This document shows, piece after piece, positions 2,888 through 49,621 of a stretch of 64,000 nt of DNA. The notes beneath the pieces were generated by a model that did not search any database, was not told the origin of the DNA, and saw only the letters and a program-made list of their open reading frames with translations. The translations under genes and the position numbers were made by a program. The stretch covers positions 248,001 through 312,000 of IMG/VR virus record IMGVR_UViG_3300050120_000230; one strand, 5' to 3'. Position 1 is the first letter of the stretch; every line of letters begins with the position of its first letter.

Positions 2888-3192
2888 TCCATCTCGTCTC
2901 TACATCAAGCGAAGCGGATCAACTTGGGCGAAGGATTCCTCGCTCCACGGCTACACACGCGGCCCTCGAACTGATTCAACGTGTTCGAGGTAACGAGCGA
3001 GAAATACCGCTACTGTTTGGTCTCGACACGTCTCACGCAATTCTGAAGCCGTGGCGAATACAGGGTATAGCGGCATCGTTGCATACCGCAGAGTGGCAGT
3101 TTATCTGGGAATCTATTGGCTTCCTACTCATCGGTGACTTAGAGGCGTTTGAGCGAGATTGTCTCTATATCAAACTGGCGTTGGACACGTAG
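2884..3192 (+). CDS. Hypothetical protein
   Basis: ATGA overlap with the upstream ORF. Confidence 0.55.
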   Translation: MIHLVSTSSEADQLGRRIPRSTATHAALELIQRVRGNEREIPLLFGLDTSHAILKPWRIQGIAASLHTAEWQFIWESIGFLLIGDLEAFERDCLYIKLALDT

Positions 3193-3752
3193 CCCAAGAG
3201 AGTGCGAATCGCCTGTTTGCCATTGGGTAGCAGCTTGCGGCTACCAATTCCTGCCCAGACGCCGTGCGGCTTAGGCACATCGGTGACCGCAAGCCACCCG
3301 TCTTCACCGGCCCACATAAACCAAGCTCCCGTGATCTGATCGAAGACGTAGGCTTCACATGCCTCTCCATCAAATCGGTCGATGAACATCTGAACGGCCC
3401 AAGATGTGCCACCGGTTACGATGCCGTCCTCGAAGCTTGCCACGGCGTAGACGCGCTCCGCGTCTTTGACCTGATACCAGTTTCGCCGCAGCAAATTCTT
3501 GACGAACAGACTCTTGGGCGGGAACCAGCGTTTAATGCCCTTGCTAGCGGCCTTGCAGGGGCCGTCAGCGGCCTCAAGCTGTTCTGGGGTCAACACCACT
3601 AGCTCAGCCTCCGGGGCCGCTGAGCGGTGTCCTGAGAAGCTAAAATGGACAACCATGTGACCGATCATGCCAGCGCACATGCCCCATTGTAGATCAGCGC
3701 CTTCGGCGCCGCCACTCAGGCAGATGTCATCTAGGTTCGAAGTCGTAGTCAT
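3165..3752 (-). CDS. SLOG/YspA-like nucleotide-binding protein
   Basis: CLSGGAEGADLQW glycine-rich motif; GGTSWAVQM; GIGSR. Confidence 0.55.
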   Translation of the reverse strand: MTTTSNLDDICLSGGAEGADLQWGMCAGMIGHMVVHFSFSGHRSAAPEAELVVLTPEQLEAADGPCKAASKGIKRWFPPKSLFVKNLLRRNWYQVKDAERVYAVASFEDGIVTGGTSWAVQMFIDRFDGEACEAYVFDQITGAWFMWAGEDGWLAVTDVPKPHGVWAGIGSRKLLPNGKQAIRTLLGYVSNASLI

Positions 3753-4035
3753 AGGTCACGGTTACCAGCCCTCTAGCACAATTATCCGAGATAATCCAGT
3801 CGTAATAGACCATCTTGAATAGTGTTGCGTCAGCAAGACTCTTAAAAGAAAGGAAGACGAGGGTCGTTTGTTTCGTCCAACCGTCATTGTCCGGTTTGCC
3901 ATAGCCAGTTTTGGCTTTGGCTTTTATTCTGAAGTTGCAATTGGTGTTGAGCCACAGGATCATTTCATCGATCCATTCAGCAAACTTGGTGTCCTCGCTC
4001 GGCCCATCTAGATAGAACTTTGACCATTGGGTCAT
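3727..4035 (-). CDS. DAxxFK[LM]xW-family protein
   Basis: DATLFKMVYY. Confidence 0.7.
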   Translation of the reverse strand: MTQWSKFYLDGPSEDTKFAEWIDEMILWLNTNCNFRIKAKAKTGYGKPDNDGWTKQTTLVFLSFKSLADATLFKMVYYDWIISDNCARGLVTVTYDYDFEPR

Positions 4036-4547
4036 AGGAGAGCACGGCGCGTATTTTCTAGCATTTGCTCCGTCACCATTTGCTTCAGGATTTGACGTTT
4101 CGCTCTACGCTTTTGTTTGCTGCCTCGCGGCGCCTTTCGATATCGCACACGAAGCGCAAAAATCGCGGCCGTAGGTCCGGTCATCGGTTGCACGCCACAA
4201 ATGTCATAAGCGATGACATTCGGCATAGCACGGCGAACGAGCGAGATAAGAACGCGATTGAGTTTCTGTTCGTCGGTGATGATCTCCCCAGAGAAGAACA
4301 GCTTGAACAGAGTGGCGTCACGATTCGAGCGGAACTTCACCTGAATGAACGACGGCCATTTGAACTGTTCCCACGTCTGGCCGCCGCCAGAACTGCCGAT
4401 CTTCGCGACCTTGGCCGTCTTCGTTTTGTTGGCGCGCAACCATTCTTCAATGCGGTCGTGCATTTCGCGAAATTGATCGACGATTGCGTTCGCCGATGAA
4501 TTGGGACGCAGATCGGGCCGGAGGCAGAAAGTGGACCACTTGGACAT
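4032..4547 (-). CDS. DAxxFKL-family domain fused to a major-capsid (gp23) Gol-like segment
   Basis: DATLFKLFF followed by VLISLVRRAMPNVIAYDICGVQPMTGPTAAIFALRVRY. Confidence 0.75.
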   Translation of the reverse strand: MSKWSTFCLRPDLRPNSSANAIVDQFREMHDRIEEWLRANKTKTAKVAKIGSSGGGQTWEQFKWPSFIQVKFRSNRDATLFKLFFSGEIITDEQKLNRVLISLVRRAMPNVIAYDICGVQPMTGPTAAIFALRVRYRKAPRGSKQKRRAKRQILKQMVTEQMLENTRRALL

Positions 4548-4552
4548 TTGGT

Positions 4553-5113
4553 TTACGATGTCACGAAATTGAACGGAGCGCAAACGCCTCCGCTGAACTC
4601 GGCCGCTGCCTCAAGTGCCGCTTCAAGTCGCCATTTCGGCTTCAGGTTGGCATGAGTTCCGGTCGTGTAGAGCGAACCAAGCGCGTAGCTTTCTCCGCAG
4701 CCCACAGCAGCATACTCCATGAGATTTTCGCCGACTTGAAAATCTGCATCGATCTGGAAGAGGCGGCCCTGAGTCCCAACGAGGAAACAACCGCCGGTTT
4801 CTTCGTTGGAATCGATACGGCTGAAACCATGTTCTTTGAATGATTTTCGCAAGGCCGTAATGAACTCCCGCACCATGAACTCCATCAGCGGGTCATCGGT
4901 CTTGGCTTTATCGAAATCTTCGAACTTCGGTGGCTTGAAGTCATATTGAAGAATCTGACCCATCCGAAACGACGAGGTGAAGCCCATCGCGAAGTCCCCA
5001 TTGGTGAAAACCTTCTTGTCTTTGCGGATGACGATGTCGAGGCCAGACACACCGGCGCTGTCGCCTGCTAGATGCGTCTTACCCTTGTGGGCGATCCCAA
5101 CAATGCAAGTCAT
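4553..5113 (-). CDS. HslV/proteasome-type Ntn (Thr) protease
   Basis: Starts MTCIVG (N-terminal Thr nucleophile); AGDS; AVGCGESYALG. Confidence 0.75.
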   Translation of the reverse strand: MTCIVGIAHKGKTHLAGDSAGVSGLDIVIRKDKKVFTNGDFAMGFTSSFRMGQILQYDFKPPKFEDFDKAKTDDPLMEFMVREFITALRKSFKEHGFSRIDSNEETGGCFLVGTQGRLFQIDADFQVGENLMEYAAVGCGESYALGSLYTTGTHANLKPKWRLEAALEAAAEFSGGVCAPFNFVTS

Positions 5114-5122
5114 GAGGAACTC

Positions 5123-5776
5123 TTACAGGCAGACGCGGAGGACTTCCGCGTGAAGATGGGCGATGCTGAGATCATTGCTGATGGTCTCGTCGAGCGGGGC
5201 GCCGATCCATGCCCATTCCGACTCATGGATGTTATATTGCGTCTCCATGTGCCAACGCGCGACTTGTGCCGTTCCAACACCGGGAAGCGATCCACCGTGA
5301 CCGTTGGCGATCTTGGCACACTCGAACCACTCCGGTTCAGGGCCACGCTTTACGCGAACGACCTTGCCACCAAATTTTCGACCGAGATCAAGTTCGTTCG
5401 GGAACCTGCCGTCGCACAGGACGACGCTCGCATCTTCGGAAAGAAGACTGATCTTCCGTTCGATGTTCAGAATCCAAAGGTCCATGTTGAAGTGCTGGCG
5501 GAACACATTGGTCCCGACCAACTGCATAGCCAGACGTGGGGTAAAGTTCGGGATATTAAGTTTGTCGGACCACCACTGGTCCACAGTCTCGCGCCATGCT
5601 CGGCTTTCGCCGGTGTCTCCTTCCAGCAAGGCCCGCTCCCAGCAAAAGATGGAAGCCAAGGCATCCTTCAAGCTTTCTGCGAAGCTGAAGTTCTTGTATC
5701 CGTAGTTCTCTACTAGAAACCTACCGGCAGTGTCCTTGCCACTACCTTTGAACCCCACCAAAGCGACCAAATTCAT
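5123..5776 (-). CDS. Deoxynucleoside monophosphate kinase (T4 gp1-like)
   Basis: GFKGSGKDT, FAESLKDA, TPRLAMQLVGT, DGRFPNE, HESEW. Confidence 0.9.
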   Translation of the reverse strand: MNLVALVGFKGSGKDTAGRFLVENYGYKNFSFAESLKDALASIFCWERALLEGDTGESRAWRETVDQWWSDKLNIPNFTPRLAMQLVGTNVFRQHFNMDLWILNIERKISLLSEDASVVLCDGRFPNELDLGRKFGGKVVRVKRGPEPEWFECAKIANGHGGSLPGVGTAQVARWHMETQYNIHESEWAWIGAPLDETISNDLSIAHLHAEVLRVCL

Positions 5777-5797: not shown

Positions 5798-6346
5798 TTA
5801 AGTATTCCTCACTTTAACCAAGCCCTTTGGGAATGTCATTATTCCGAGCGCATAGGGGATGTTCTTTTCGCTGTAGCCATTCCAAACCCGAGGAATCTCG
5901 AAGTTCATCGTGATCCACATGCGGTAACGCTCTGCATCTTCTTCATTTCGGAAAGCAGCGTTGTTGATTTGCGAATCTGACCCGATGCCGTGAGCGTTGT
6001 AGACATCAAGTTCGATGCCCCGCCCCTCATAGTTTCCGCAAAATATGGAGATATCTGGACTGATTTCGTAGAGCGGATTGATGGATTTGAACCCGGCGCC
6101 GCTGTTTCGCATGATAAAGCCACCCACTTCATGGGGCGTCAGGTGCGTCATTCGGGCAAAGTCACGAAACCCTTCTGCTCTACCAAAAGTACCGGGTCTG
6201 CGGATGTTGACTTCTTGGCCCACGAACCAGACGGTTTGTCCAAGCATGGTCTTCATCTCCATCAGCGTAGAGATGCGACCGTGGGCTTGGTCGAGACAAT
6301 ATTCAGGCGGGTGGATCATGGAATATTTTGTATAGCACCATGTCAC
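5798..6346 (-). CDS. Hypothetical protein
   Basis: Part of a packed minus-strand gene run. Confidence 0.55.
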   Translation of the reverse strand: MTWCYTKYSMIHPPEYCLDQAHGRISTLMEMKTMLGQTVWFVGQEVNIRRPGTFGRAEGFRDFARMTHLTPHEVGGFIMRNSGAGFKSINPLYEISPDISIFCGNYEGRGIELDVYNAHGIGSDSQINNAAFRNEEDAERYRMWITMNFEIPRVWNGYSEKNIPYALGIMTFPKGLVKVRNT

Positions 6347-6644
6347 GCTCGCTGGCGAATTGTAGACCGTAGCGATAGCAATTCCGCCCGCCGCCTACCC
6401 AAAACACGCGCACAACTTTGAAGCCGTCTGCCAAGTTGTCACAACACCAGCCGAGATGCTCGGGTGCGATATGAAAGGAATGGGGGTAGGTCATGCCTTT
6501 GCTTTTCTCGCCGGATGTGCGGCGATATCGCTTGGCAAGCCAGAGCACCATCGGTGGACAGTCGCGATCCGAGGCAACCGGCACGTCGTCGAACAATACG
6601 TTCGCGTTGAAGATGTCCCGCACCATCCCCAGATTTTTAGTCAT
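6303..6644 (-). CDS. DAxxFK[LM]xW-family protein
   Basis: WCCDNL...F.SERDMVLYKIFH. Confidence 0.65.
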   Translation of the reverse strand: MTKNLGMVRDIFNANVLFDDVPVASDRDCPPMVLWLAKRYRRTSGEKSKGMTYPHSFHIAPEHLGWCCDNLADGFKVVRVFWVGGGRNCYRYGLQFASERDMVLYKIFHDPPA

Positions 6645-6976
6645 CGGAAAGCGCGGGGCACCGGAGTTGTGGCATCATGCAGAACGACCGCCAGACGCGT
6701 CAGGCCGACCCACGCAAGGAACTGCATGAGCGGATGCCCCACGATGTTGTGGAACGCCCACGCGCCCTTCTTCCACTTCAGACGACGACCTTCCACGGCA
6801 CTGGGTTTGAATGCCCAAATCGCCTCGATTGCATCGAAGCCCATGGCTTTGAACGTCTCACCATCATTGGTCACGATATCGACTTCAGCGTGTTCGATGG
6901 AGCCGATGTCGATCCGCTTGATATGGTGCAGGGGGATGAGTTGATCCCCGGCTTTCAGCGCGAGAGGCCGCCACAT
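6641..6976 (-). CDS. Hypothetical protein
   Basis: Overlapping gene run. Confidence 0.55.
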   Translation of the reverse strand: MWRPLALKAGDQLIPLHHIKRIDIGSIEHAEVDIVTNDGETFKAMGFDAIEAIWAFKPSAVEGRRLKWKKGAWAFHNIVGHPLMQFLAWVGLTRLAVVLHDATTPVPRAFR

Positions 6977-9721: not shown

Positions 9722-10233
9722 GAGGGTTCTTTCATGAGCTTGGCGATGGCTGCTTTTTCCTTCGCCTGCAAGTCGTGTTCTTGTGAAATGTTTACGCGCT
9801 CGCGCCACCGCATGAACGCATTGAAGATGATGACTTGAGCCACGGTCGTGTTCGTGTTTCCGTTCTCACGACGAAATCCGGGCATGTCCGTTCCATCGAC
9901 CTTGACAGAAATAGATCGAATTTCAACCGGACTGTTGCCGATTGGATCGGCCCCGACGAAGATATTGATGCCGAGTTTATCGTTCCCAATTCCGAATGTT
10001 TCTTCTTTCCAATCCGCAGGATGGGCGTCAAGAAGGTCCGATATTTTCTGCGCGAGTTGATTTGCGGTCGCCTCTTGCATCGTAGGGGGCACGGGGACTT
10101 CCGCTTGATGGTGAGGCGTCATACCAATCCACACCGCATAACCTACCGCACAGACCAAAGCCACGATCCCACACGTTTGCAGGATGAGCTTGAACATCGG
10201 GCTGGGTTTAGGGAACTCGCGGATGATCTTCAT
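9718..10233 (-). CDS. Membrane-anchored protein
   Basis: N-terminal TM helix. Confidence 0.6.
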   Translation of the reverse strand: MKIIREFPKPSPMFKLILQTCGIVALVCAVGYAVWIGMTPHHQAEVPVPPTMQEATANQLAQKISDLLDAHPADWKEETFGIGNDKLGINIFVGADPIGNSPVEIRSISVKVDGTDMPGFRRENGNTNTTVAQVIIFNAFMRWRERVNISQEHDLQAKEKAAIAKLMKEPS

Positions 10234-11231
10234 GGCATCAGGGGGAACTTACCGACGAACGGGCGGGCTTCGCCCTTCTTGGCGAACACGTAGGCACAAG
10301 TGTCGAGCGGGATGAGATGGAAGCTGGCGCCGTCGCGCAGCGGATAGCTCGGATCATGCGTGACGCCCGTATGCAGTCCAGCCGCATCGGCGGTCTCGAC
10401 GGCGTCACGCATTTCGCTCTCGGTCACCGAGAGGACGATGCAAGTCCCGAAGCCATAGGCGGCGGTCTCCCACGAATCCAAAAGGTCTTCCAGCGCGTCG
10501 CCGAGTTGATTCGGGACGGTTTCCCCCGCTTTCTTGCGGGCCTCAAACACCATCTGGTTGGCGGCGTGGGTGCCTTGCGCGACGGCTTTGCCCGCGTTCA
10601 TCGACGCGAGATCGTTCCGCATCAGAATGTAGAGATACGGTTCGGCATCCTGCGAATCGTCCACTTTGGGGTTCAGGGTTGCCCAGAGCGCCGTCACGGC
10701 GGGATCGAGGCTGTCACCGAACATCTTGTGCGCTTTGTGGGCGCGGACGAACGTCGAAGCCGATTCGACCAGATCAGGTTCACTGGCAATCTGGCCTTCG
10801 GTTTCTTCCAACAGGGCATCACGCAGGTTGTGCACTGCCTCTTCGATCAGGTCTTTGTCGCCACCCTTAACGATGTCAACGACCGACCTTAGACGGCCGC
10901 GAAGAGATTGCGGATTTTCGGCCGCCCACTCCGCAGGCGTGATGACGCTTTCCGGGGGTTGCGGAAGATCGGCCGCCATCGCCAAGGCGATTTCTTCCTT
11001 CAGCCCGTTGATTGCCGCTTCCACATCCGTGCGATTCGGGCGGGTCTTCGACGACACGTTGGAGTAAATGGCCAGTGCCGAATAGAGGTTCTGTTCGACC
11101 GGGCTCCGTGTCTCGCGAACATCTTGTTCCGAAAGGCGATATTGCCGGAAAATGGACAGGAGGTTCACGCCAGCGAGTGCATCGGACAGGAACATCCGGG
11201 TCGCGACGATAACATCGGTGAAAGAAGTCAT
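10230..11231 (-). CDS. Peptidyl-tRNA hydrolase 2 (Pth2) domain with long unknown N-terminal extension
   Basis: YLYILMRNDLASMNAGKAVAQGTHA...FGTCIVL...HDPSY...DTCAYVF. Confidence 0.75.
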   Translation of the reverse strand: MTSFTDVIVATRMFLSDALAGVNLLSIFRQYRLSEQDVRETRSPVEQNLYSALAIYSNVSSKTRPNRTDVEAAINGLKEEIALAMAADLPQPPESVITPAEWAAENPQSLRGRLRSVVDIVKGGDKDLIEEAVHNLRDALLEETEGQIASEPDLVESASTFVRAHKAHKMFGDSLDPAVTALWATLNPKVDDSQDAEPYLYILMRNDLASMNAGKAVAQGTHAANQMVFEARKKAGETVPNQLGDALEDLLDSWETAAYGFGTCIVLSVTESEMRDAVETADAAGLHTGVTHDPSYPLRDGASFHLIPLDTCAYVFAKKGEARPFVGKFPLMP

Positions 11232-11279
11232 TGGATGCCCCTCAGTGAGCAACCAGAATAACTCGTAAACGAGATCAGG

Positions 11280-12128: not shown

Positions 12129-12452
12129 TCAATCTACAGCGGCGAGCCTCTCCGCAAAATGCATTTTGAAAATCACCGCATCGGTTTCTCTCGGGAAAGA
12201 AATGGCTACGTAGGAATGCGCGTTTCCCCACTCTTTCTTTGCATGAGTAGTCACCAATGTGAAATCATGCTCCATGTTATAGGTCCGCAAGAATTCACGG
12301 AGGCCCGACCACTCTTCATCCATCATTCGACTCAGCGAAACCACTTCGTAGACCGTCATAGGTCTAGTAAAGATGGTCCCTTGTTTTGTGGAATTCAGCT
12401 CATCGATGGTTAATGTGGCAGAAAACAACCTGAACTCAGTCTTCAACTTCAA
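12129..12452 (-). CDS. DAxxFK[LM]xW-family protein
   Basis: DAVIFKMHF. Confidence 0.65.
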   Translation of the reverse strand: MKLKTEFRLFSATLTIDELNSTKQGTIFTRPMTVYEVVSLSRMMDEEWSGLREFLRTYNMEHDFTLVTTHAKKEWGNAHSYVAISFPRETDAVIFKMHFAERLAAVD

Positions 12453-12897
12453 GACCTTTCATGACGGACAATTGCCCCTTCTCTGGGATCGGGCCGTCGA
12501 TGTCGAGCACTGTCACCACCATGGCTTGGCTCGTCTTATCGGCACGGTTGCGTCCTCGGATCACGATGACGGCTTTTTCTTCCTGAGAGATAATCACATC
12601 GTGGTCATCGTTTGGATCATATCGCCCGGCCGCCATAGCGCGGATGCGATCACGGACAGATTGTAGGTCCACGCCGTCGATGCGTTCAAGCCATCGGACA
12701 ATGGCATGGTCACTCACCATCAGGTCTTCAGGTGTGGTTTCGCTTTGTCGAATGGCGCCGTTCACAGCTTCGAACCGCGCAGCCATCATCTTTTGATCGC
12801 GAATCAAGCCGCGATTGGCCAAGGTCAACTCTTCCCTGATCCGATACAATTCGTTCAATGGAAGTCCGGCCAAGATCAAGGGATTGTTCTGCGACAT
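12436..12897 (-). CDS. Hypothetical protein
   Basis: VSDHAIVRWLER motif; downstream of TTGACG early promoter. Confidence 0.6.
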   Translation of the reverse strand: MSQNNPLILAGLPLNELYRIREELTLANRGLIRDQKMMAARFEAVNGAIRQSETTPEDLMVSDHAIVRWLERIDGVDLQSVRDRIRAMAAGRYDPNDDHDVIISQEEKAVIVIRGRNRADKTSQAMVVTVLDIDGPIPEKGQLSVMKGLEVED

Positions 12898-17027: not shown

Positions 17028-17324
17028 TTACGCCCAAAACAGCTTGAAGAGCAGCGCGTCATCCTCGGACTCAAAATAGAAGATGAACGTGAAACGGTCT
17101 TCGGGCGTCCCTAAACGCTCGGACGTGTCATAGAACACCACATGCTTGAGTTTTTTGTTGCACCACTTCACGAAACCCGTTTGGAAAATCTTCAGTTCCC
17201 AGAGTGATCCTTTCCGATCAGGATGACGTAGGCGAACTGTGGGGACCATGACATAGTGTAGGCCGCGCACTTCATCCTCGCTCGGATGCTGGTATCTAAG
17301 CGGCGATTTCCGGCGAGTTCTCAT
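17028..17324 (-). CDS. DAxxFK[LM]xW-family protein
   Basis: DALLFKLFWA. Confidence 0.7.
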   Translation of the reverse strand: MRTRRKSPLRYQHPSEDEVRGLHYVMVPTVRLRHPDRKGSLWELKIFQTGFVKWCNKKLKHVVFYDTSERLGTPEDRFTFIFYFESEDDALLFKLFWA

Positions 17325-17342
17325 CCCCTCAATATACTTGAA

Positions 17343-17372
17343 TTGACTTCATCGTCCAGAGGGGTCTAAATA
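17343..17372 (+). promoter_or_regulatory. Hybrid promoter TTGACT-N17-CTAAATA for the release factor gene
   Basis: TTGACT 17343-17348; CTAAATA 17366-17372. Confidence 0.55.
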
Positions 17373-21070: not shown

Positions 21071-21153
21071 GCCACGGTGGCTCAGCGGCGACAGCGCGTC
21101 ATTCGTAATGACGAATACAAACACCGGGGGTTCGAGTCCCTCCCGTGGCACCA
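21071..21153 (+). tRNA. tRNA-Thr(CGT), enlarged variable loop, encoded CCA
   Basis: Acceptor GCCACGG/CCGTGGC; anticodon stem CGTCA/TGACG, loop TT-CGT-AA; T-loop TTCGAGT. Confidence 0.85.
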
Positions 21154-24821: not shown

Positions 24822-25229
24822 TCAGCCAATCCACCGGAGCTTGAAGTAGAGAGCGTCATTAGACGTGGCGAACTCAACCGTATAGCGCACCATTTCTTCT
24901 TGGGTGGCGTGATAATATTCGGCGTGGCGGCGCGGATAGGCCACGTTGCCTTTCAGATTTTCCATGCACCATTCTTTGACCGGCGCCTTCAGTTTCACGC
25001 GCCATTGTTCGCGCAAGATCGAAGTCGGGATCGGCGACGATATGTCGAGAATGTCTTCGGCTTGATCCGGTGGAACGAAGATGCGGTGCGTCTTGACTTG
25101 AACGTTTAGCGGAAAGGACACGATCTTCGATTTGTCATCGTCCAGAAACCGAATCATCGTATCACTCGGAAAGTCGCTCATGCTCAGCAGACTTTTGATC
25201 GTGATTTTTTCGACTGTCATGACCACCAT
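24822..25229 (-). CDS. DAxxFK[LM]xW-family protein (tandem array, member 8)
   Basis: DALYFKLRWIG. Confidence 0.75.
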   Translation of the reverse strand: MVVMTVEKITIKSLLSMSDFPSDTMIRFLDDDKSKIVSFPLNVQVKTHRIFVPPDQAEDILDISSPIPTSILREQWRVKLKAPVKEWCMENLKGNVAYPRRHAEYYHATQEEMVRYTVEFATSNDALYFKLRWIG

Positions 25230-25531
25230 CGCATCTTGAAGTGAATCGCTGACATCTCATCCATGAACCAGATCGCGTTGACCGGATCGTCTTGGTTGAT
25301 GATTCTCGGCATCGGAATATGTTCCATGCAATCGTATCGAAATCCGGCCGGAATGTAGTGGAAGCCCACTGCACCTTTCACGTTGTCGTCCATCCATGCG
25401 AGCACGTCATCACGAAGGCGTTGGACGGTCTTTCCGCCCTCGTGGGTTCTCACGACCAGATCGTTTGGTATCAGGCAGCGGATAGCAGTTTCTATTTCAT
25501 CTACGCTCGGCCAGCGATTCTCAACCATCAT
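25217..25531 (-). CDS. DAxxFK[LM]xW-family protein (array member 7)
   Basis: SAIHFKMRWWS. Confidence 0.75.
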   Translation of the reverse strand: MMVENRWPSVDEIETAIRCLIPNDLVVRTHEGGKTVQRLRDDVLAWMDDNVKGAVGFHYIPAGFRYDCMEHIPMPRIINQDDPVNAIWFMDEMSAIHFKMRWWS

Positions 25532-25742
25532 GCTTATCTCCCCAACGTAGCTTGAAATGGAGATAGTCTTCGTCGCATTTGAAGGTGATGATGCAGACGG
25601 TGTTGAAGAAATCCATACCCCAGTGCCACTCGTCGCGCATGTTCAGTTTCAGCCACGCGAGAACCTCTGGCGAAGGCCGCCAAGTGTCGTATTTGGTGAA
25701 TACCGAATGTTCTTGGGAAATGGTGATACAACCGCCAGACAT
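25521..25742 (-). CDS. DAxxFK[LM]xW-family protein (array member 6)
   Basis: DYLHFKLRWG; start overlaps upstream TGA. Confidence 0.7.
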   Translation of the reverse strand: MSGGCITISQEHSVFTKYDTWRPSPEVLAWLKLNMRDEWHWGMDFFNTVCIITFKCDEDYLHFKLRWGDKHDG

Positions 25743-25996
25743 CAGAACCACTTCAGCTTGAAATAAATCGCATCCTTGGTTCGCATCGTAACGGCTGGAT
25801 TTCCGACCATCATCTTTGTGCCAAGTTGACCCACCAGCATGAAAGCCTGTGGCGCCAGTTTCCAATATTTGATGCGTTCAGCCCTACACCATTCGTCCAC
25901 GTCAGAACGCAAGAAAATATCATACACGCGAAACCACGATTTGCTAAGACCTTCTATCACCAATTCTCTGGGCAATTCGAAGCGTTCGCGTTTCAT
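25742..25996 (-). CDS. DAxxFK[LM]xW-family protein (array member 5)
   Basis: MKRERFE...DAIYFKLKWF. Confidence 0.7.
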   Translation of the reverse strand: MKRERFELPRELVIEGLSKSWFRVYDIFLRSDVDEWCRAERIKYWKLAPQAFMLVGQLGTKMMVGNPAVTMRTKDAIYFKLKWF

Positions 25997-26220
25997 AGCC
26001 ATCGCATCTTGAACATCAAAGCATCGTTGTCGTTGGCAAATTCGATCTCGAACGGCAGCGCGTAGTCTTTGCGTTCGGAGGACGATTTCCACGACAGATA
26101 AAAATCCTGCACCAACTCTTCGCGGCACCAAGCATCCATTTCATCCAACAGACGAACCTCAGCCAGAACGCGAGTATCATCTCGGATGAATTGAATGGGA
26201 ACAGGGACGATCATGCCCAT
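25993..26220 (-). CDS. DAxxFK[LM]xW-family protein (array member 4)
   Basis: DALMFKMRWL. Confidence 0.75.
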   Translation of the reverse strand: MGMIVPVPIQFIRDDTRVLAEVRLLDEMDAWCREELVQDFYLSWKSSSERKDYALPFEIEFANDNDALMFKMRWL

Positions 26221-26477
26221 TATCCCTCTTCTCCCCAGAACATTTTGAACAGCACCGCATCGGTGTCTTTTGCGAAACTCGCCTCCGCAGTCACCGGCCG
26301 ATTGATGCTAAATCGCGCGGTGCAATCGTTCGGATCACCCTTGCGATGCACTCGCCATTTTCCCTTTAGATTTTTCGCGACCCAAGACAGCACGTCTTTT
26401 CGGAAACGATATCGGCCGTCGCGGATTTCGGCCACGCCGTATGGGACTGAGATGGTGGCCTTCATCTTCATAGCCAT
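26220..26477 (-). CDS. DAxxFK[LM]xW-family protein (array member 3)
   Basis: DAVLFKMFWG. Confidence 0.75.
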   Translation of the reverse strand: MAMKMKATISVPYGVAEIRDGRYRFRKDVLSWVAKNLKGKWRVHRKGDPNDCTARFSINRPVTAEASFAKDTDAVLFKMFWGEEG

Positions 26478-26788
26478 CGCATCTTGAAGGCCAACGCCGC
26501 CGCGTCCGTTCTGAATCGAAAATAAGGCTGGCGATCATCGTCTAGGAAACAGCGAATGTTTCCTCCGATCATTTCCTTCGCCCATTGTTCGATTTCTGGC
26601 GCGGGCAGCCAAATTGACGGCCGCGACCACCATCCGGCCTGCATTCCGGCCGGTCCCGCCGCCCCCCGCGTGAACCACGCCAGTGGATTATGTTCCAACC
26701 CAGCAGAGGGTTTTATCGGCAGTTCGATCATGATCGAAAAACCGAAATTAGCCCAATCACCGGCGAATTCTTCTTCAGTCATAGCCAT
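26468..26788 (-). CDS. DAxxFK[LM]xW-family protein (array member 2)
   Basis: AALAFKMRWL. Confidence 0.75.
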   Translation of the reverse strand: MAMTEEEFAGDWANFGFSIMIELPIKPSAGLEHNPLAWFTRGAAGPAGMQAGWWSRPSIWLPAPEIEQWAKEMIGGNIRCFLDDDRQPYFRFRTDAAALAFKMRWL

Positions 26789-27054
26789 CGCATCTTGAAC
26801 AGCAGCATGTCGGAATCGGTTTCAAACGAGAACGTGAATTCGTAGAGGCCATCTCGGTCGAATGGGTAGGGTGCGGGAAGTTGAGCACTGGTGATTTCCC
26901 ATCCCGCGTGAAGGTTCTCCTCACACCAGACGCGGACATCGCGGCGGATCACGGTGAAGGCATGGGCCGCCTCACGATCATCGCACCAATCTATGTCCAC
27001 GCCGACTATGCCAAGGTACTCAGGCGGGGCGGCCAAACTGAACTCTGAACCCAT
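26779..27054 (-). CDS. DAxxFK[LM]xW-family protein (array member 1)
   Basis: DMLLFKMRWL. Confidence 0.75.
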   Translation of the reverse strand: MGSEFSLAAPPEYLGIVGVDIDWCDDREAAHAFTVIRRDVRVWCEENLHAGWEITSAQLPAPYPFDRDGLYEFTFSFETDSDMLLFKMRWL

Positions 27055-27100
27055 GATTAAGGGTCTAGCATAGCCCGATTTTTTCGTCTACCAAAGTGGA

Positions 27101-34368: not shown

Positions 34369-35697
34369 ATGATTCAGGGGCTCGACTACTTCTACGACCG
34401 TCAACAGCCGCGCTTTCTTGAACAGATCGTGCGAGCATTCTCGGGCTTCCAGTATATGGCTGGCAGTCGTGCCGGTTTGCCGCCTGCATTGCAGATGGTC
34501 CCTTGCCGATTGGCTTCCACGAACAACGTGGTCGCCAACATCATGAAAAATCAGTCGGAGAACACGCTCCTGACTGTGCCCATGATTACCGTGTGGCAGA
34601 CCAACATCACCGGCAGCACCGACCGTTTGCAGAACCGAAACCACATCGACACCCGCCAGATCGTCGAACGGGCCATCGATCCGAATACCGGGCAATACAC
34701 GGCCGCTCGCGGCCAGAGCTACACCCTCGAACGCATCATGCCCCTGCCGTTCGACATGAACGTTCAGGTCGATATTTGGACTTCCAACTTGGACCAGAAA
34801 TACCAGTTGGAGGAACAAATCCTCACGATCATGTGGCCGAACTTCAACATCCAAAACAGCGACAACGCGCTCGACTGGACGGCCCTCACTGAGGTTCGGA
34901 TTACGGACATCACCCACACGTCGCGCTCGATCCCAATTGGAACATCGGACGAGATCGACATCATGACGCTGCAACTCGAAGTTCCGATCTGGCTCTCGCC
35001 GCCTGCCAAGATTCGTCAGCAGAACCTCATCGAGCAAATCGTCACCAACATCAACGACACCAGCCCGTTGCCCGGCGTCCTTTCCGATGCGGCAAACCCC
35101 GGCACACTGTTGACCCAAAACATCGTCACGCCCGGCAACCATTACATCAAGGTCGATGGTGACGAGATCACGCTGCTCGGCCCGGATGGCGAGCATGAGC
35201 CGCTTCCTTGGCAACCGCTGCTGGACCTTTATGGTTTCCTACGACCCGCCATGAGCCAACTCTATCTGCGGAAAACTTCCGACATCGAAGGACCGTCGAT
35301 TATCGGCGTCCTGCAAGCGTCGGGCGATCCTACGAAGCTACTTTGGCAGATCGACCCCGACACGCTCCCGGCGAACACCCTCGATCCCGTGGATGCCGTG
35401 ATCGATCCCATGCGAACGTTCCCCGGTGACGGTCTTGCTGCTCCGGCCGAAGGGGTTCGCTACCTGCTCATCAATGAGATGGGACCGAGCGTCGCTTGGG
35501 GTCCAATCACCGCACGCTACGGCGATATCATCGAGTTCCATTCCGGCGAATGGGTCGTGGATTTCGCATCGGTGGGGCAAGGCGTTCAGCACGTCACCAA
35601 TCTGCACACCGGCCGCCAACTTCGCTGGACCGGAGATGACTGGGTTCTGGCTATCGACGGGACGTTTGGCCCCGGCTACTGGCGGCTGGCGGTTTAA
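34369..35697 (+). CDS. Tail sheath stabiliser/terminator, T4 gp15-like, with C-terminal extension
   Basis: YFYD.Q..RF..Q..R.FS.F; LTVPMI; ER.MP.PF....VDIWTSNLDQK.QL.EQIL; PIWLSPPAK; CTAAATA at 34335. Confidence 0.85.
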   Translation: MIQGLDYFYDRQQPRFLEQIVRAFSGFQYMAGSRAGLPPALQMVPCRLASTNNVVANIMKNQSENTLLTVPMITVWQTNITGSTDRLQNRNHIDTRQIVERAIDPNTGQYTAARGQSYTLERIMPLPFDMNVQVDIWTSNLDQKYQLEEQILTIMWPNFNIQNSDNALDWTALTEVRITDITHTSRSIPIGTSDEIDIMTLQLEVPIWLSPPAKIRQQNLIEQIVTNINDTSPLPGVLSDAANPGTLLTQNIVTPGNHYIKVDGDEITLLGPDGEHEPLPWQPLLDLYGFLRPAMSQLYLRKTSDIEGPSIIGVLQASGDPTKLLWQIDPDTLPANTLDPVDAVIDPMRTFPGDGLAAPAEGVRYLLINEMGPSVAWGPITARYGDIIEFHSGEWVVDFASVGQGVQHVTNLHTGRQLRWTGDDWVLAIDGTFGPGYWRLAV

Positions 35698-41726: not shown

Positions 41727-42002
41727 TCAGAGCGTAAGGAACATTTTCGCGAAGACAGCATCGGCCGGGACCTTGCATCCCACGATGTATTCGTAGTTCA
41801 CCGAATGCATGGTGCAGAATGTCCAATCGTTCGTCATGAATGGCGCGACTGCATCTGGAAAATCAGAAGGTTTGATTTTCGAAGAGATCGTGACCGTGCA
41901 TGGGAAACCATTGTCGATCATGTATTGGAGACGTTCATCCCAATCGGCGTGTTTCTGGTAATACTCACCAGCCCATTCGCTTAGAGGAATGCACCTACTC
42001 AA
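41727..42002 (-). CDS. DAxxFK[LM]xW-family protein
   Basis: DAVFAKMFL. Confidence 0.65.
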   Translation of the reverse strand: MSRCIPLSEWAGEYYQKHADWDERLQYMIDNGFPCTVTISSKIKPSDFPDAVAPFMTNDWTFCTMHSVNYEYIVGCKVPADAVFAKMFLTL

Positions 42003-42262
42003 AACCAGAACAACTTGAACATAGTTGCATCGGTCTCACTGACCGTTTCGAATGTCGGCTTGTAGCCTATGCCAGAATACCAACTGGCATTCATGTTCTC
42101 AATGCACCAGTCCCATGTTTCATGGGCCATGAAGTAGCCGTCGTTCTGGTTGCCCTCAACGAGATGGCGAGGCAAGTCGATCTTATATACGACAGGTTTC
42201 GTCGATTGGATCAGTTCGACCCAATTGTTCAAGCCACAGTAAGATTTACCGAGAGCAATCAT
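41999..42262 (-). CDS. DAxxFK[LM]xW-family protein
   Basis: WCIEN...DATMFKLFWF. Confidence 0.75.
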   Translation of the reverse strand: MIALGKSYCGLNNWVELIQSTKPVVYKIDLPRHLVEGNQNDGYFMAHETWDWCIENMNASWYSGIGYKPTFETVSETDATMFKLFWF

Positions 42263-42576
42263 AGCCAGAACGTCTTGAAGAGCACGGCGTCGCGCTCGTT
42301 GAATAGTTGAAAATGGATATACGTCTTGGGACGGGGCTCATAGTGACAGACGTTCACCAGTCCTTCTCTATTTTCCATGAGCCAGTCATAGGCATCTTGT
42401 GCTCGCCCACTGAACATGTTCGGCCCGAAGTCATAGGACGCGCGCTTCGGTGTGGCAGCCGTTCGAAGCTTCAGGCCAAACGTCGCCACGGTCACGTTGC
42501 AGAGTTCAATGATCTCTGGCGCGGGCTCATTAGCACCATCGCCCCATCCGAAAGGAAACACCGGCCTCACATCCAC
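42259..42576 (-). CDS. DAxxFK[LM]xW-family protein
   Basis: DAVLFKTFWL. Confidence 0.75.
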   Translation of the reverse strand: MDVRPVFPFGWGDGANEPAPEIIELCNVTVATFGLKLRTAATPKRASYDFGPNMFSGRAQDAYDWLMENREGLVNVCHYEPRPKTYIHFQLFNERDAVLFKTFWL

Positions 42577-42830
42577 ATCAACTTGAACTGCAAGGCATCG
42601 CGATAATTGGGAATGCCCAGATAGAAAACATCTGCATTTGAATTCGGGTAAAACAGGTCCGCAAAATTTGCCTTTGCCCAGTTGAATGCGGCTTCCGCCT
42701 TTGGCTCCCAGTTATAGACTGCCACCGGCGCGTCGCAACATTGAATGGCTTCTCGTTGCAACGCAAATACCCAGCCCGCCGCAACTTCGACCGGCCCAGA
42801 GATTTCCAAAATCGGGTCAGAGATTTCCAT
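42567..42830 (-). CDS. DAxxFK[LM]xW-family protein
   Basis: DALQFKLMWM. Confidence 0.75.
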   Translation of the reverse strand: MEISDPILEISGPVEVAAGWVFALQREAIQCCDAPVAVYNWEPKAEAAFNWAKANFADLFYPNSNADVFYLGIPNYRDALQFKLMWM

Positions 42831-42907
42831 TAACGAAGCCTAACACGGTCGAGAGTGGTTCGCCAAAATTTCGTTGACCATTTTACCCAGCCTGCTACCA
42901 TCTCAGG

Positions 42908-45827: not shown

Positions 45828-46285
45828 CGGTCAAGGACTTGTCTAATCTTCTCGATACGCTGGTCGTCGATGACACGCGCTCGATCATTCTCGTTCCAAA
45901 GCAAACGCCGAATCACCTAGACTCAGCGCACTCCATCCCACCGGAATATTTGTGGATGATTCCGTTGTCGGCGGCTGGACACTACATCATCCACGACCAC
46001 GCCAAAGAACCAGAGGGCATACAAGCATTTGAGCATTGTAGGTCACCGATCATTCAATACGATTTGTATGATGACCGTAGCTTCAGCTACCAGCGCACTC
46101 GTCTCCACGACATGGGCATGACACAGTGGTGCGAAGAAACCCTTCGCGGCCACTACATCGTGCGTAAGAACTATGAGGCGGTTTTGCCGCCGCCGAGCGT
46201 CAAAACGATCATCGAAGTCTGGTTCGATGACCCAGTGGACGCCGTGGTTTTCAAGATGCGATGGAAGGGCAACCCATGCGAATAG
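45821..46285 (+). CDS. DAxxFK[LM]xW-family protein
   Basis: WCEE...DAVVFKMRWK. Confidence 0.7.
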   Translation: MVTVKDLSNLLDTLVVDDTRSIILVPKQTPNHLDSAHSIPPEYLWMIPLSAAGHYIIHDHAKEPEGIQAFEHCRSPIIQYDLYDDRSFSYQRTRLHDMGMTQWCEETLRGHYIVRKNYEAVLPPPSVKTIIEVWFDDPVDAVVFKMRWKGNPCE

Positions 46286-46578
46286 AGGATCGCCCGAACA
46301 TCGCTCTTTCGCATCTTGACCTTCAAGATGGCAGGCACGAGGACATCAGCGATCTGCCTATCGTCGTCGTGCCGTTGAAAAACGTCTGTATTTCTGGTGG
46401 CAGCCTTGCATTGGCGCCCGAGACTAGGCATTGGCTAATTGCCAACGTCGGCCACCAATATCGTGGCGAGCAGATTTCGTGCTGGGATTATATCCTCGCA
46501 GAGAGCGCCACCGGGCTCGCGACGTTTCGGTTCAAAGACGTAACGCACGCCACCTTGTTCAAAATGTTCTTCTCATGA
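46276..46578 (+). CDS. DAxxFK[LM]xW-family protein
   Basis: HATLFKMFFS. Confidence 0.7.
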   Translation: MRIEDRPNIALSHLDLQDGRHEDISDLPIVVVPLKNVCISGGSLALAPETRHWLIANVGHQYRGEQISCWDYILAESATGLATFRFKDVTHATLFKMFFS

Positions 46579-49072: not shown

Positions 49073-49148
49073 GGAGCGGTAGCTCAGTGGTAGCAGCGCC
49101 GGTTTGTCAGGCCGAAGGTCGCGGGTTCGATCCCCGTCCGCTTCGCCA
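49073..49148 (+). tRNA. tRNA-Asp(GTC), encoded CCA
   Basis: GGAGCGG/CCGCTTC; loop TT-GTC-AG. Confidence 0.9.
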
Positions 49149-49173
49149 TTTCATTTGAAGCTAGGTGATTTGA

Positions 49174-49245
49174 GCGGCTGTAGCTCAGTGGTAGAGCATC
49201 TCGTTGCCAACGAGAATGTCGCGGGTTCGAATCCCGCCAGCCGCT
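49174..49245 (+). tRNA. tRNA-Gly(GCC), no encoded CCA, flanked by a 13-bp inverted repeat
   Basis: GCGGCTG/CAGCCGC, U73; TCTCG-TTGCCAA-CGAGA. Confidence 0.9.
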
Positions 49246-49281
49246 CAAATCACCTAGAAGGCAATCCTCCGAGACCTTTAC

Positions 49282-49355
49282 GGAGCGTTCGACTATGGGT
49301 AAGTCATCACCCTTTCAAGGTGAGGTAGCGGGTTCGAGCCCCGCACGCTCTACCA
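49282..49355 (+). tRNA. tRNA-Glu(TTC), encoded CCA
   Basis: TCACC-CTTTCAA-GGTGA. Confidence 0.9.
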
Positions 49356-49357
49356 AT

Positions 49358-49431
49358 GGACCGTTCGTCTATGGGTAGGACACCACGTTCTCAGCGTGGG
49401 GGAAGGGGTTCAAGCCCCCTACGGTCTACCA
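49358..49431 (+). tRNA. tRNA-Glu(CTC), encoded CCA
   Basis: CCACG-TTCTCAG-CGTGG. Confidence 0.9.
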
Positions 49432-49468
49432 ATCTCAGCTTCGGTTGAGACGATCTTTGAAACTATAT

Positions 49469-49540
49469 GCGGGCGTAACTCAGCGGTAGAGTGTCAGCCT
49501 TCCAAGCTGTTCGTCGCAGGTTCGATCCCTGTCGCCCGCT
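49469..49540 (+). tRNA. tRNA-Gly(TCC), no encoded CCA
   Basis: GCGGGCG/CGCCCGC, U73; TCAGC-CTTCCAA-GCTGT. Confidence 0.9.
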
Positions 49541-49549
49541 CACTTTCAT

Positions 49550-49621
49550 GCAATCTTCGTCTATCGGCTAAGACGCCTTGCTTTCCGGCAGGAAAGAGCA
49601 GTTCGATTCTGCTAGGTTGCT
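49550..49621 (+). tRNA. Atypical tRNA-Gly-like gene with non-canonical (6- or 8-nt) anticodon loop
   Basis: GCAATCT/AGGTTGC plus U73; T arm AGCAG-TTCGATT-CTGCT; CTTGC-TTTCCG-GCAGG. Confidence 0.6.

Follow-up and report, generated by a model that had tools for sequence, protein, structure and literature searches.

The major capsid protein gp23 of phage T4 contains, within its 521 residues, a 29-residue stretch named the Gol peptide (AVMGMVRRAIPNLIAFDICGVQPMNSPTG, approximately residues 93-122), which binds the host translation factor EF-Tu and thereby activates the Lit protease encoded by the e14 element. The isolated peptide binds domains II-III of E. coli EF-Tu and a longer N-terminal piece of gp23 binds more stably (PMC3014915); thirteen residues of Gol are reported to be essential by scanning mutagenesis (Copeland and Kleanthous 2005). 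The segment is the most conserved stretch of T4-superfamily capsid proteins (PMC3014915), as our own comparisons confirm, and the reason for its conservation and for its binding to EF-Tu has been an open question since the Lit work. Several recently described defence systems (Lit, CmdTAC, Avs7/Dsr1, CapRel and a TIR system) are triggered by capsid protein, two of them together with EF-Tu. Avs7 senses capsid protein together with EF-Tu (bioRxiv 10.64898/2026.01.04.697583), while CmdTAC senses new Gp23 (PMC11618068). Phages are also known to encode small accessory proteins that imitate or mask what a defence system reads, for example Ocr as a DNA mimic, DSAD1 against DSR2, and the Tad and Acb sponges. 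These share with the protein presented here the concept only, without relation in sequence or fold, and no counter-defence protein described so far is a fragment of the phage's own structural-protein family. Finally, the protein may resemble the capsid-targeting sequences of T4 internal proteins and the scaffold-binding delta domains, which is a lead only: a short peptide could direct a passenger domain into the prohead through the scaffold, and the tail of our protein resembles the delta-domain helix. The T4 targeting sequences, however, are N-terminal, about 10 residues long, unrelated in sequence to our protein, and are cleaved off, whereas no cleavage motif is conserved in our protein.

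Here we describe a gene of a giant T4-superfamily phage which carries the Gol segment outside of any capsid gene. The analysed stretch of DNA, further referred to as the window, comprises 64,000 nucleotides of the IMG/VR record IMGVR_UViG_3300050120_000230. A first-pass annotation, made from the sequence alone, noticed the conserved segment of gp23 in an accessory protein of a "DAxxFKL" family, followed by a basic tail and with no other capsid sequence present. This observation proved correct. The open reading frame exists, a public gene caller predicts exactly this protein (P0001), and the core of the segment reads VLISLVRRAMPNVIAYDICGVQPMTGPTAAIFALRVRY. The similarity to gp23 is far beyond chance, its homology is certain, and the residues shared by all T4-superfamily capsids are kept. 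The features of the locus are summarized in the following table.

Features of the locus (positions in the 64,000-nucleotide window; residue numbers refer to the 171-aa protein P0001)
Position	Strand	Feature	Supporting observations
4032..4547	-	Complete gene of the 171-aa chimeric protein; ATG at 4547, stop codon at 4032-4034	Identical protein called on JGI contig Ga0500009_000031 and on a Logan contig; orthologues start at the same position (MSKW / MRNW / MW)
4278..4547	-	N-terminal carrier domain, residues 1-90, ending in VKFRSNRDATLFKLFFS; predicted ferredoxin-like beta-alpha-beta-beta-alpha fold; member of the expanded DAxxFKL family	Family HMM; exhaustive profile search E=5e-16 for P0001; AlphaFold2 pLDDT 83-95 over most of residues 1-90 (66 for residues 51-60), strands 5-9, 45-50, 67-72, helices 19-40, 75-84; no significant PDB, Pfam or PHROG relative
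4122..4265	-	Capsid-derived segment, residues 95-142 (Pfam Gp23 match); 38-residue core, residues 99-136, at 4140-4253	Pfam Gp23 PF07068 E=7.5e-18, profile positions 3-45 of 376; PHROG 138 'major head protein' E=2e-19; phmmer to T4 gp23 structures (5vf3, 6uzc) E=3e-11, residues 96-144 against gp23 91-139, covering the whole Gol peptide; hhalign probability 98.7%, E=1.6e-16 against giant-phage capsid residues 71-115; AlphaFold2 pLDDT about 50, no stable fold of its own in the model
4086..4139	-	K/R-rich linker, residues 137-154 (RKAPRGSKQKRRAKRQIL)	Read from the sequence; a K/R-rich stretch directly follows the segment in every architecture found
4038..4085	-	C-terminal helix, residues 155-170 (KQMVTEQMLENTRRAL), resembling the conserved helix of the capsid propeptide (delta domain): KKKVMExVLENTRxDL in giant-phage capsids, RRaVTAviLENqEKAL in T4-type capsids	hhalign P=1.3e-6 and 1.4e-6 against the two kinds of capsid N-terminus, reversed-tail controls P about 0.6; AlphaFold2 helix at 144-170, pLDDT 79-94
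4553..5113	-	Upstream neighbour, 5 bp away: HslV / proteasome-beta-like N-terminal-nucleophile peptidase, 186 aa, starting MT; probably co-transcribed with the chimera	PHROG 1040 'peptidase HslV family' E=5e-22; weak Pfam Proteasome and NCBIfam 20S beta matches; next to the chimera in three of five lineages, absent in two
5123..5776	-	dNMP kinase (T4 gp1-like), conserved upstream anchor of the locus	Pfam DNMK; 47% identical to the kinase of phage Phosso; adjacent or nearly adjacent to the chimera in all lineages
3727..4035	-	Downstream neighbour overlapping by 4 bp: 102-aa stand-alone paralogue of the DAxxFKL family	Family HMM E=1e-6 on the first pass, 6e-19 after iteration; alignment
3165..3752	-	195-aa protein, conserved downstream anchor; homologue of Phosso protein '392', which in Phosso directly follows dNMP kinase	tblastn 55% identity; PHROG 768 DprA-like E=2.5e-11; Phosso annotation

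In comparison with complete capsid proteins of the T4 superfamily (PF07068; the giant-phage type is represented by Atu_ph07 gp215, Phosso, PA5oct and Rak2), the protein contains only a small part. Profile positions 46-376, i.e. the bulk of the A, P and I domains, are absent, and at 171 aa instead of about 400-520 aa the protein cannot form a capsid shell. A tblastn search of the window with a full gp23 (phage phiN3) found only this fragment, so that no complete capsid gene lies there. The segment follows the family motif RDATLFKLFFS and is itself followed by a K/R-rich stretch, RKAPRGSKQKRRAKRQ. The C-terminal helix was not recognized in the first-pass annotation, yet it matches the propeptide helix found at capsid residues of about 34-52. 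The protein thus holds counterparts of two capsid N-terminal elements, but in swapped order: in capsid proteins the propeptide helix comes first, followed by the cleavage site and the N-arm with the Gol segment. Two other origins of the flanking parts were considered and rejected. Firstly, the tail might have been colinear with the capsid spine region (IQILKETVEAKTRRL), but hhalign did not report such a match and the propeptide helix is the only significant one. Secondly, a tblastn alignment spanning residues 1-147 suggested that the N-terminus might be a diverged capsid propeptide; hhalign gave only E=0.3, and the region belongs to the paralogue family.

The DAxxFKL family is real. Its members share a domain of about 80 residues with a conserved W..N in the first helix and F.F...DAxxFK[LM] at the end, and W36, F81 and K82 are conserved. 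The exhaustive profile search yielded 884 clusters, and an HMM built from the N-terminal domains finds about 20-26 paralogues in the window, almost all of which stop 2-6 residues after FK[LM]xW. In P0001, by contrast, an 85-residue extension follows the motif, and this defines a conserved sub-family. Structural searches with the carrier domain gave only generic ferredoxin-like matches (E at least 0.03). Some relatives (P0357 type) share the carrier domain but have a different extension; its weak match to the capsid spine helix (Pfam E=0.002; hhalign E=5e-4, probability 31%) is not convincing. Apart from the capsid-segment match, the protein has no match to PADLOC defence components, NCBIfam or PHROG models, a search that included no dedicated anti-defence library.

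The simplest alternative would be a functionless relic of illegitimate recombination between a family gene and a capsid gene, or a broken, split or mis-assembled capsid gene. Many short Gp23-domain proteins in the databases are indeed truncated capsid genes (109 of the 120 listed hits begin with the normal capsid N-terminus), and a 5-residue microhomology, KLFFS against KLFES of the capsid N-terminus, could have mediated a fusion, although it is not significant. However, intact orthologues with 36-53% identity occupy the same locus in several contigs from independent samples, the fusion is syntenic in at least five diverged giant-phage contigs, at least 12 sequence clusters carry it, and the identical protein was assembled independently in two data sets. 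No downstream capsid remnant was found in any frame, and the tail is conserved and non-colinear. Lack of conservation in related phages, which would have indicated a recent neutral insertion, had been set beforehand, together with failure to bind EF-Tu, as the ground for rejecting the interpretation of the first-pass annotation; with regard to conservation we found the opposite. The capsid segment is the most constrained part of the protein, with dN/dS of 0.06-0.21 against 0.39-0.76 for the carrier domain (dS above 1, synonymous sites saturated), and R106, G118, P121 and M122 are invariant across 12 members. We therefore regard the relic as strongly disfavoured. The fusion is old and syntenic rather than a recent "transplant", and the gene is widespread in a giant-phage clade, both of which the first-pass annotation missed.

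Recent duplication or gene conversion from a resident capsid gene can be rejected for this contig as well. Two scans with degenerate DNA patterns of the segment hit the phage's own 415-kb contig only once, at the chimera itself, so its conservation is unlikely to be kept up by copying from a resident capsid gene of the same motif type. The phage's own capsid gene was not found among the 120 best relatives of the Atu_ph07 capsid protein, in a scan of a genome collection, or among the best 80 rows of IMG/VR scans with capsid alignments and with the Phosso capsid, portal or scaffold proteins (at least 600 rows in three of these four scans, 328 stretches with the scaffold). About 18 kb to the right of the window contained only accessory genes, and synteny with Phosso breaks beyond the gp15-like gene, so the direction of the capsid gene could not be predicted from it. 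The own capsid type is thus inferred from relatives: all 228 capsid segments recovered from giant-phage-type loci, including every 416-578-kb contig examined, carry a near-invariant segment (VILPVIRRVMPTVIANE...).

The window's copy matches the T4-type consensus at 33 of 38 core residues but this giant-phage capsid type at only 23 of 38. It is identical in 30 of 33 residues to a real T4-type capsid protein found on a 9.7-kb viral contig (L219), a close relative of which lies on a 163-kb contig (L218). This might suggest a weapon against competing phages, i.e. a dominant-negative capsid-interface fragment or a trigger of capsid-sensing suicide aimed at co-infecting T4-type phages rather than at the host. 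We consider it very unlikely. Other members of the same orthologous family are closer to the giant-phage type (P0315, 25 against 18; P0373, 24 against 18), so the T4-likeness is not a family property; T4-like phages with their own near-perfect copy, described below, would poison themselves; and the "foreign" nature of the segment is only an inference as long as it rests on an inferred own capsid. Whether the donor was of T4 type or giant-phage type remains unresolved, as family members range between the two and RVRY also occurs in some T4-type capsids.

Stand-alone proteins with the same segment are not restricted to giant phages. In uncultured, ordinary T4-like phages we found two unrelated architectures (P0006, P0035, P0038, P0120 and P0094, to our knowledge undescribed), in which the segment is placed behind a proline-rich or a coiled-coil N-terminus. 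It starts at the same point (about 3 residues before [VI]LISLVRR), ends at the same point (just after R.RY), and is almost identical to the T4-type consensus (35-37 of 38). The proteins are small (122-141 aa), lie in non-structural gene blocks and have no propeptide-like helix. One of the architectures is always followed by a stand-alone tail-sheath C-terminal domain. The recurrence of the segment with identical boundaries strengthens the idea of a stand-alone module, and the segment appears to be the functional unit.

The first-pass annotation interpreted the protein either as a stand-alone module recruiting or sequestering EF-Tu, or as a decoy for capsid-sensing defence. Its interpretation is partly supported: the fusion of a Gol-type segment to an accessory-family domain, the exceptional conservation of the segment and its modular nature hold, whereas binding or sequestration of EF-Tu and any decoy action on Lit- or CapRel-like systems are inferences by analogy with T4 Gol. 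What our analysis demonstrates is a conserved, selected accessory protein of a clade of giant T4-superfamily phages, in which a small, confidently predicted carrier domain is followed by a predictedly unstructured copy of the Gol segment, a basic linker and a helix resembling that of the capsid propeptide; these correspond to the two most conserved elements of the first ~115 residues of unprocessed capsid protein. From this we infer, tentatively, that the protein acts as a molecular mimic of nascent, unassembled capsid protein and binds whatever that region binds. The only partner demonstrated for the isolated peptide is EF-Tu, a universally conserved host protein, which would also explain why the peptide hardly varies among phages of very different hosts. 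If the protein is made before or alongside the real capsid protein, it would occupy EF-Tu, or the sensors that read capsid-EF-Tu complexes (Lit-type proteases, Avs7-type receptors), in a non-productive way and would blunt capsid-triggered abortive infection.

Several features agree with this presumed role. In the AlphaFold2 model, the confident carrier domain and C-terminal helix contrast with a low-confidence, undocked capsid segment, which is what a displayed binding peptide would look like. The distribution is patchy, as for an accessory gene: the gene is absent at the same junction in Phosso and the carrier domain has no match in 50,697 isolate phage records. Furthermore, the neighbourhood is non-structural and rich in translation genes (peptidyl-tRNA hydrolase, aminoacyl-tRNA synthetases and tRNAs). 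There are nevertheless serious difficulties. In the Lit system, Gol bound to EF-Tu is the activator, so a faithful mimic should trigger Lit rather than block it, and protection needs the extra assumption that the carrier domain or the tail makes the complex non-productive. EF-Tu is very abundant and its stoichiometric masking would need very high expression; scans for promoters, terminators and T4 late promoters gave nothing above chance. Within the giant-phage family the segment also drifts well beyond what capsid proteins tolerate (18-33 of 38 residues identical to the T4-type consensus), so strict retention of EF-Tu binding is not guaranteed.

The main rival, which we consider somewhat less likely still, is a prohead-targeting or assembly factor. 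The propeptide-like helix would bind the scaffolding core and the Gol-type segment (end of the N-arm plus a P-domain strand) would dock on capsid subunits, so that the protein is incorporated into, caps or regulates assembling capsomers; it might carry the ferredoxin-like domain into the head as cargo or prevent off-pathway polymerisation. The propeptide helix is removed from real capsid protein by the prohead protease and is therefore relevant only before maturation. In T4, gp23 residues 66-105 and 132-160 are disordered in the unexpanded head and later form the arm and "N-fist" that make contacts within and between capsomers (PMC9546572), which makes the segment a natural interface piece. 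The basic stretch could face packaged DNA. The sheath C-terminal domain mediates contacts between sheath subunits, and the propeptide-like helix together with the paired sheath fragment of T4-like phages fit an assembly role at least as well as mimicry. On the other hand, the patchy distribution described above is unusual for an assembly factor, and phage T4 is among the records that give no match to either architecture's N-terminal part. The gene lies in a nucleotide-metabolism and translation block instead of with head genes, the T4-like versions have neither the propeptide-like helix nor a folded cargo, and inspection of the sequences revealed no conserved L/I-x-E protease site flanking the segment. 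The mismatch between the window's copy and the giant-phage capsid type would be odd for a partner of its own capsid, though that type is only inferred.

A broader hypothesis, doubtful at present but not excluded, is that phages of two different groups encode stand-alone copies of the most conserved pieces of their most abundant structural proteins, the capsid Gol segment and, in T4-like phages, also the tail-sheath C-terminal domain. These would act as molecular mimics that neutralise or misdirect host sensors reading such pieces (Lit with EF-Tu, Avs7 or Dsr1 with EF-Tu, CmdTAC, CapRel-like systems). If true, this would represent a general "structural-protein decoy" counter-defence that has not been described.

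Taken together, short proteins annotated as "Gp23 domain" are not all truncated capsid genes, since about 10% of those inspected here are genuine chimeras. A naturally occurring, selected, stand-alone version of exactly the Gol segment, found on three unrelated scaffolds in two phage groups, gives a small soluble reagent with which one can ask what the segment binds outside the capsid. It is also a candidate for a new type of counter-defence or assembly control.

Translation of the minus-strand ORF at its locus gives a protein of 171 aa (coordinates of all features are collected in the table below), and a public gene caller predicts exactly this protein on the source contig, JGI Ga0500009_000031 (415,409 bp, also IMGVR_UViG_3300050120_000230, where the window corresponds to about 248,001-312,000). 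The identical protein was also assembled independently in a Logan run. Its residues 99-136 read VLISLVRRAMPNVIAYDICGVQPMTGPTAAIFALRVRY. Pfam Gp23 matches residues 95-142 at E=7.5e-18, but only to profile positions 3-45 of 376, and PHROG 138 'major head protein' gives E=2e-19. Against solved structures, residues 96-144 align to T4 gp23 91-139 at E=3e-11, a stretch that contains the Gol peptide named in the first-pass annotation. A tblastn search with a complete gp23 as query finds nothing else in the window. The annotated observation, a capsid Gol peptide within an accessory protein, is confirmed in every detail.

Coordinates of the chimera, of its neighbours and of further features in this and related phages
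Feature	Location	Strand	Remarks
Chimera, complete ORF	window 4032-4547	minus	171 aa, ATG at 4547
Core of capsid segment	window 4140-4253		residues 99-136
KLFFS, end of family motif	window 4290-4304		residues 82-86
HslV / proteasome-beta-like peptidase	window 4553-5113	minus	PHROG 1040, E=5e-22; starts MT; 5 bp upstream of chimera, probably co-transcribed; at this position in three of five lineages
Carrier-family paralogue	window 3727-4035		gene immediately downstream of chimera
Protein of about 190 aa	window 3165-3752		homologue in Phosso follows dNMP kinase directly
Other carrier-family paralogues	window 24822-27087, 59852-60422, 46037-46578, 41999-42839, 17028-17348, 12129-12458, 6303-6644 and others		24822-27087 is a tandem run (24.8-27.1 kb)
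gp15-like tail protein	window 34369-35697
Translation genes	window 52199-54136; 10230-11252; L028 14312-15901; L220 18702-20060		class I aminoacyl-tRNA synthetase of 645 aa, PTH2 peptidyl-tRNA hydrolase, arginyl-tRNA synthetase just left of the window (L028), another class I synthetase to the right (L220)
Seven tRNA genes	window 21071-21153 and 49073-49621		Thr, then a cluster Asp, Gly, Glu, Glu, Gly and one with an odd anticodon loop
Acb1-family protein and PrkA-DUF444-SpoVR gene trio	L114 15421-16911 and L220 10842-15811		encoded by the phage, about 3-17 kb right of the window end; Acb1 family, Pfam PF23474, is the anti-CBASS family
ABC-transporter ATPase, permease-like gene, ~590-aa OmpA-domain protein	L028 17038-20516 (left of the window), also L001, L003, L305, L306		conserved in the giant-phage genomes
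Gene upstream of the capsid gene	L006 6976-8220 and L117 9308-10720 (Atu_ph07 and Phosso)		annotated 'Rad50 ATPase'; reads like a coiled-coil scaffolding protein, may be misannotated
Gol-segment protein and sheath-domain protein, conserved gene pair	L301 6001-6859, L304 7001-7826, L308 about 5919-6740		uncultured T4-like phages; between gp55 and gp47

The window has no nucleotide-level relative among isolate phages. Its gp15-like tail protein is 42% identical to that of Sinorhizobium phage Phosso (469 kb), 40% to that of Agrobacterium phage Atu_ph07 (490 kb), and 31% to those of PA5oct-type phages and Salicola phage SCTP-2. The window therefore comes from an uncultured giant phage of the T4 superfamily, with 55% G+C and a number of genes for translation.

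Residues 1-90 of the protein form a carrier domain that ends in VKFRSNRDATLFKLFFS. An HMM built from this region in three orthologues, iterated on the ORFs of the window and of two related loci, collects about 20-26 paralogues of about 80-110 aa in the 64-kb window alone (motif W..N ... F.F...DAxxFK[LM]xW). Almost all of the aligned paralogues stop 2-6 residues after FK[LM]xW, whereas the chimera continues for 85 residues. The family has no Pfam, PHROG, NCBIfam or PADLOC model. A word-indexed search found it only in three related genomes, but an exhaustive profile search of public data then found 884 clusters at E below 0.001, so it is a large and undescribed family of small phage proteins. 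AlphaFold2 models residues 1-90 mostly confidently (pLDDT 83-95, dipping to 66 around residues 51-60) as a beta-alpha-beta-beta-alpha ferredoxin-like domain, the capsid segment scores about 50, and residues 144-170 are predicted to form a helix at 79-94. Foldseek and Atlas matches are generic ferredoxin-like folds with E of 0.03 or worse. A sister sub-family (P0357, P0293 and P0374, relatives from the exhaustive search) has the same carrier domain but a different C-terminal extension. P0357 gives a weak match to the capsid spine-helix region (Pfam Gp23 profile 171-196, E=0.002; hhalign E=5e-4, probability 31%), which may be a degenerate Gol segment or a second capsid piece.

Two full-length relatives of the chimera appeared first. 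P0002 (193 aa) is 47-53% identical, depending on the aligner, and comes from a rhizosphere-sample contig, while P0003 (173 aa) is about 40% identical and lies on a 569,661-bp contig of an NCBI metagenome-assembled genome. The exhaustive search added P0255, P0268, P0269, P0275, P0277, P0286, P0315, P0373 and P0389. Wherever enough flanking DNA exists, gene order is kept: peptidyl-tRNA hydrolase ... dNMP kinase - (0-4 small genes) - chimera - a protein of about 190 aa ... arginyl-tRNA synthetase ... ABC transporter - OmpA-like. A functional link of the chimera with the adjacent HslV-like peptidase is conceivable. In Phosso the dNMP kinase is followed directly by the homologue of the 190-aa protein, 55% identical to that of the window; the chimera is therefore a clade-specific insertion at a conserved junction. 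Neither tblastn nor the family HMM finds it in the sampled parts of Phosso and Atu_ph07, and the carrier domain has no match in 50,697 isolate phage records.

Between the three first orthologues, dN/dS is 0.06-0.21 in the capsid segment with dS above 1. It is 0.39-0.76 in the carrier domain, and the tail is saturated. Across twelve members R106, G118, P121 and M122 are invariant, and I112, A113, I116, V119 and T123 nearly so. Lack of conservation in related phages, proposed beforehand as the observation that would speak against the finding, is therefore not what we see. We regard a functionless relic as very unlikely. The end of the family motif, KLFFS, resembles the first residues of giant-phage capsid proteins (MSKLFES) and could be a microhomology for the original fusion, but the resemblance is not statistically significant (E=0.3).

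The tail of the protein is capsid-derived as well, which the first-pass annotation did not include. The last 16-19 residues (consensus KkaVMqQmLENtrkaL; KKNIMQKLLENTRKELQKQ in the orthologue P0286) align to the conserved helix of the capsid propeptide. Hhalign gives P=1.3e-6 against the N-termini of giant-phage capsids (KKKVMExVLENTRxDL, residues 34-52) and P=1.4e-6 against T4-type N-termini (RRaVTAviLENqEKAL), whereas reversed tails give P about 0.6. The protein thus contains the two most conserved elements of the first ~115 residues of unprocessed capsid protein, in the opposite order to the capsid, joined by a K/R-rich linker.

The capsid segment of the giant-phage group is almost invariant. 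N[RK]VILPVIRRVMPTVIANE[IL][VI]GVQPMTGPV[GA]QIHTLRVRYA occurs in 228 recovered capsid segments, including those from all contigs of 416-578 kb examined; the isolates Atu_ph07, Phosso, PA5oct and the Rak2 group share 60-73% capsid identity. The window's copy, however, matches the ordinary T4-type consensus at 33 of 38 core positions and the giant-phage type at 23 of 38, and it is 30/33 identical to a real T4-type capsid protein on viral contig L219. Other orthologues lean the other way, with P0003 matching the T4 type at 21 positions against 24 for the giant-phage type, P0315 at 18 against 25 and P0373 at 18 against 24. A single old capture followed by divergence is the simplest reading, although the donor cannot be named. 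The ending RVRY, otherwise typical of giant-phage capsids, also closes the segment in the ordinary T4-type capsid proteins of L219 and of contig L218 (IMGVR_UViG_3300013121_000003, 163 kb), and is therefore not diagnostic of the capsid type. Two degenerate DNA signatures of the segment hit the 415-kb contig only once, at the chimera. There is thus no second copy of this variant, and no evidence of ongoing copying from a resident gene. Repeated searches did not recover the phage's own capsid gene, and that it is of the giant-phage type is inferred from its relatives. Interference with competing T4-type phages is another imaginable role, but we consider it unlikely.

Independent stand-alone versions of the segment exist. 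Of the 120 best short Gp23-domain proteins, 109 begin with a normal capsid N-terminus and are truncated capsid genes, and eleven do not. Three of these eleven are the chimera and its two closest orthologues, and three more (P0034, P0103, P0104) look like capsid genes called from an internal start. P0006, P0035, P0038 and P0120 (122-141 aa) share a proline-rich N-terminus (...LPTVWTQQWPVERPRRRP...), followed by [WF]DPILISLVRRAMPNLIAYDICGVQPMTGPTGLIFAMRSRYD, then SGKQRRKERY and an acidic end. P0094 (176 aa) has a coiled-coil N-terminus, the same segment, and then GRKKTTRKKIKEL. Their segments are 35-37/38 identical to the T4-type consensus. They lie in ordinary T4-like genomes in the variable block UvsY-UvsW-gp55-...-gp47-...-gp46, beside SIR2, NUDIX and acetyltransferase genes.

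In all seven contigs of the first architecture where the gene could be read (an eighth, L309, holds the mini-sheath, but the Gol gene was not recovered), the next gene encodes a 155-aa protein that consists of the complete tail-sheath C-terminal domain (Pfam PF17482 E=8e-17; PHROG 23 'tail sheath' positions 364-474 of 496) and is 50-57% identical between lineages. Two structural-protein fragments are thus encoded together in a non-structural block. Synonymous sites of the segment are nearly saturated between lineages (pS 0.57-1.0) while pN is 0.07-0.13. The N-terminal part has no match in isolate phages, and five IMG/VR contigs carry the motif. The same ~40-residue piece, cut at the same places and followed by a basic stretch, has thus been fixed at least three times on unrelated scaffolds, which argues that the segment itself is the working part. 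The paired sheath domain, together with the propeptide helix of the chimera, favours a scaffold- and capsid-binding role in the prohead, since both fragments belong to self-polymerising proteins. This is the main rival to the explanation we prefer, though we hold it to be somewhat less likely.

The isolated 29-residue Gol peptide binds EF-Tu domains II-III, preferentially the GDP form, and a longer N-terminal piece of gp23 binds more stably. The region is the most conserved of gp23, which led to the proposal that all these capsid proteins touch EF-Tu (PMC3014915). In the capsid, residues 66-105 and 132-160 are disordered before expansion and later form the arm and N-fist contacts (PMC9546572). 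Capsid protein triggers several defences: Lit with EF-Tu, Avs7 and Dsr1 with EF-Tu built into the complex (bioRxiv 10.64898/2026.01.04.697583), and CmdTAC through its chaperone (PMC11618068).

Several features of the chimera point the same way. The peptide appears to be displayed and unfolded, two propeptide-stage elements are retained, and the gene is accessory, patchy and placed among non-structural genes. We therefore tentatively suggest, on sequence evidence that does not by itself separate the alternatives, a mimic of nascent capsid protein that would engage EF-Tu and/or capsid sensors. Homology of the two capsid pieces, the conserved position and the purifying selection on the segment are established by our data, whereas EF-Tu binding and any action on capsid-sensing defence are inferred. 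The weakness of this explanation is that in the Lit system a faithful mimic should activate rather than protect. The interpretation in the first-pass annotation, a stand-alone EF-Tu-binding module or a decoy for capsid-sensing defence, is partly supported.

Literature searches found no description of stand-alone Gol-segment proteins or of capsid-fragment decoys. The capsid peptide itself is known, and what differs here is its reuse in a domain-shuffled accessory protein. There is a real chance that this protein represents an undescribed strategy.
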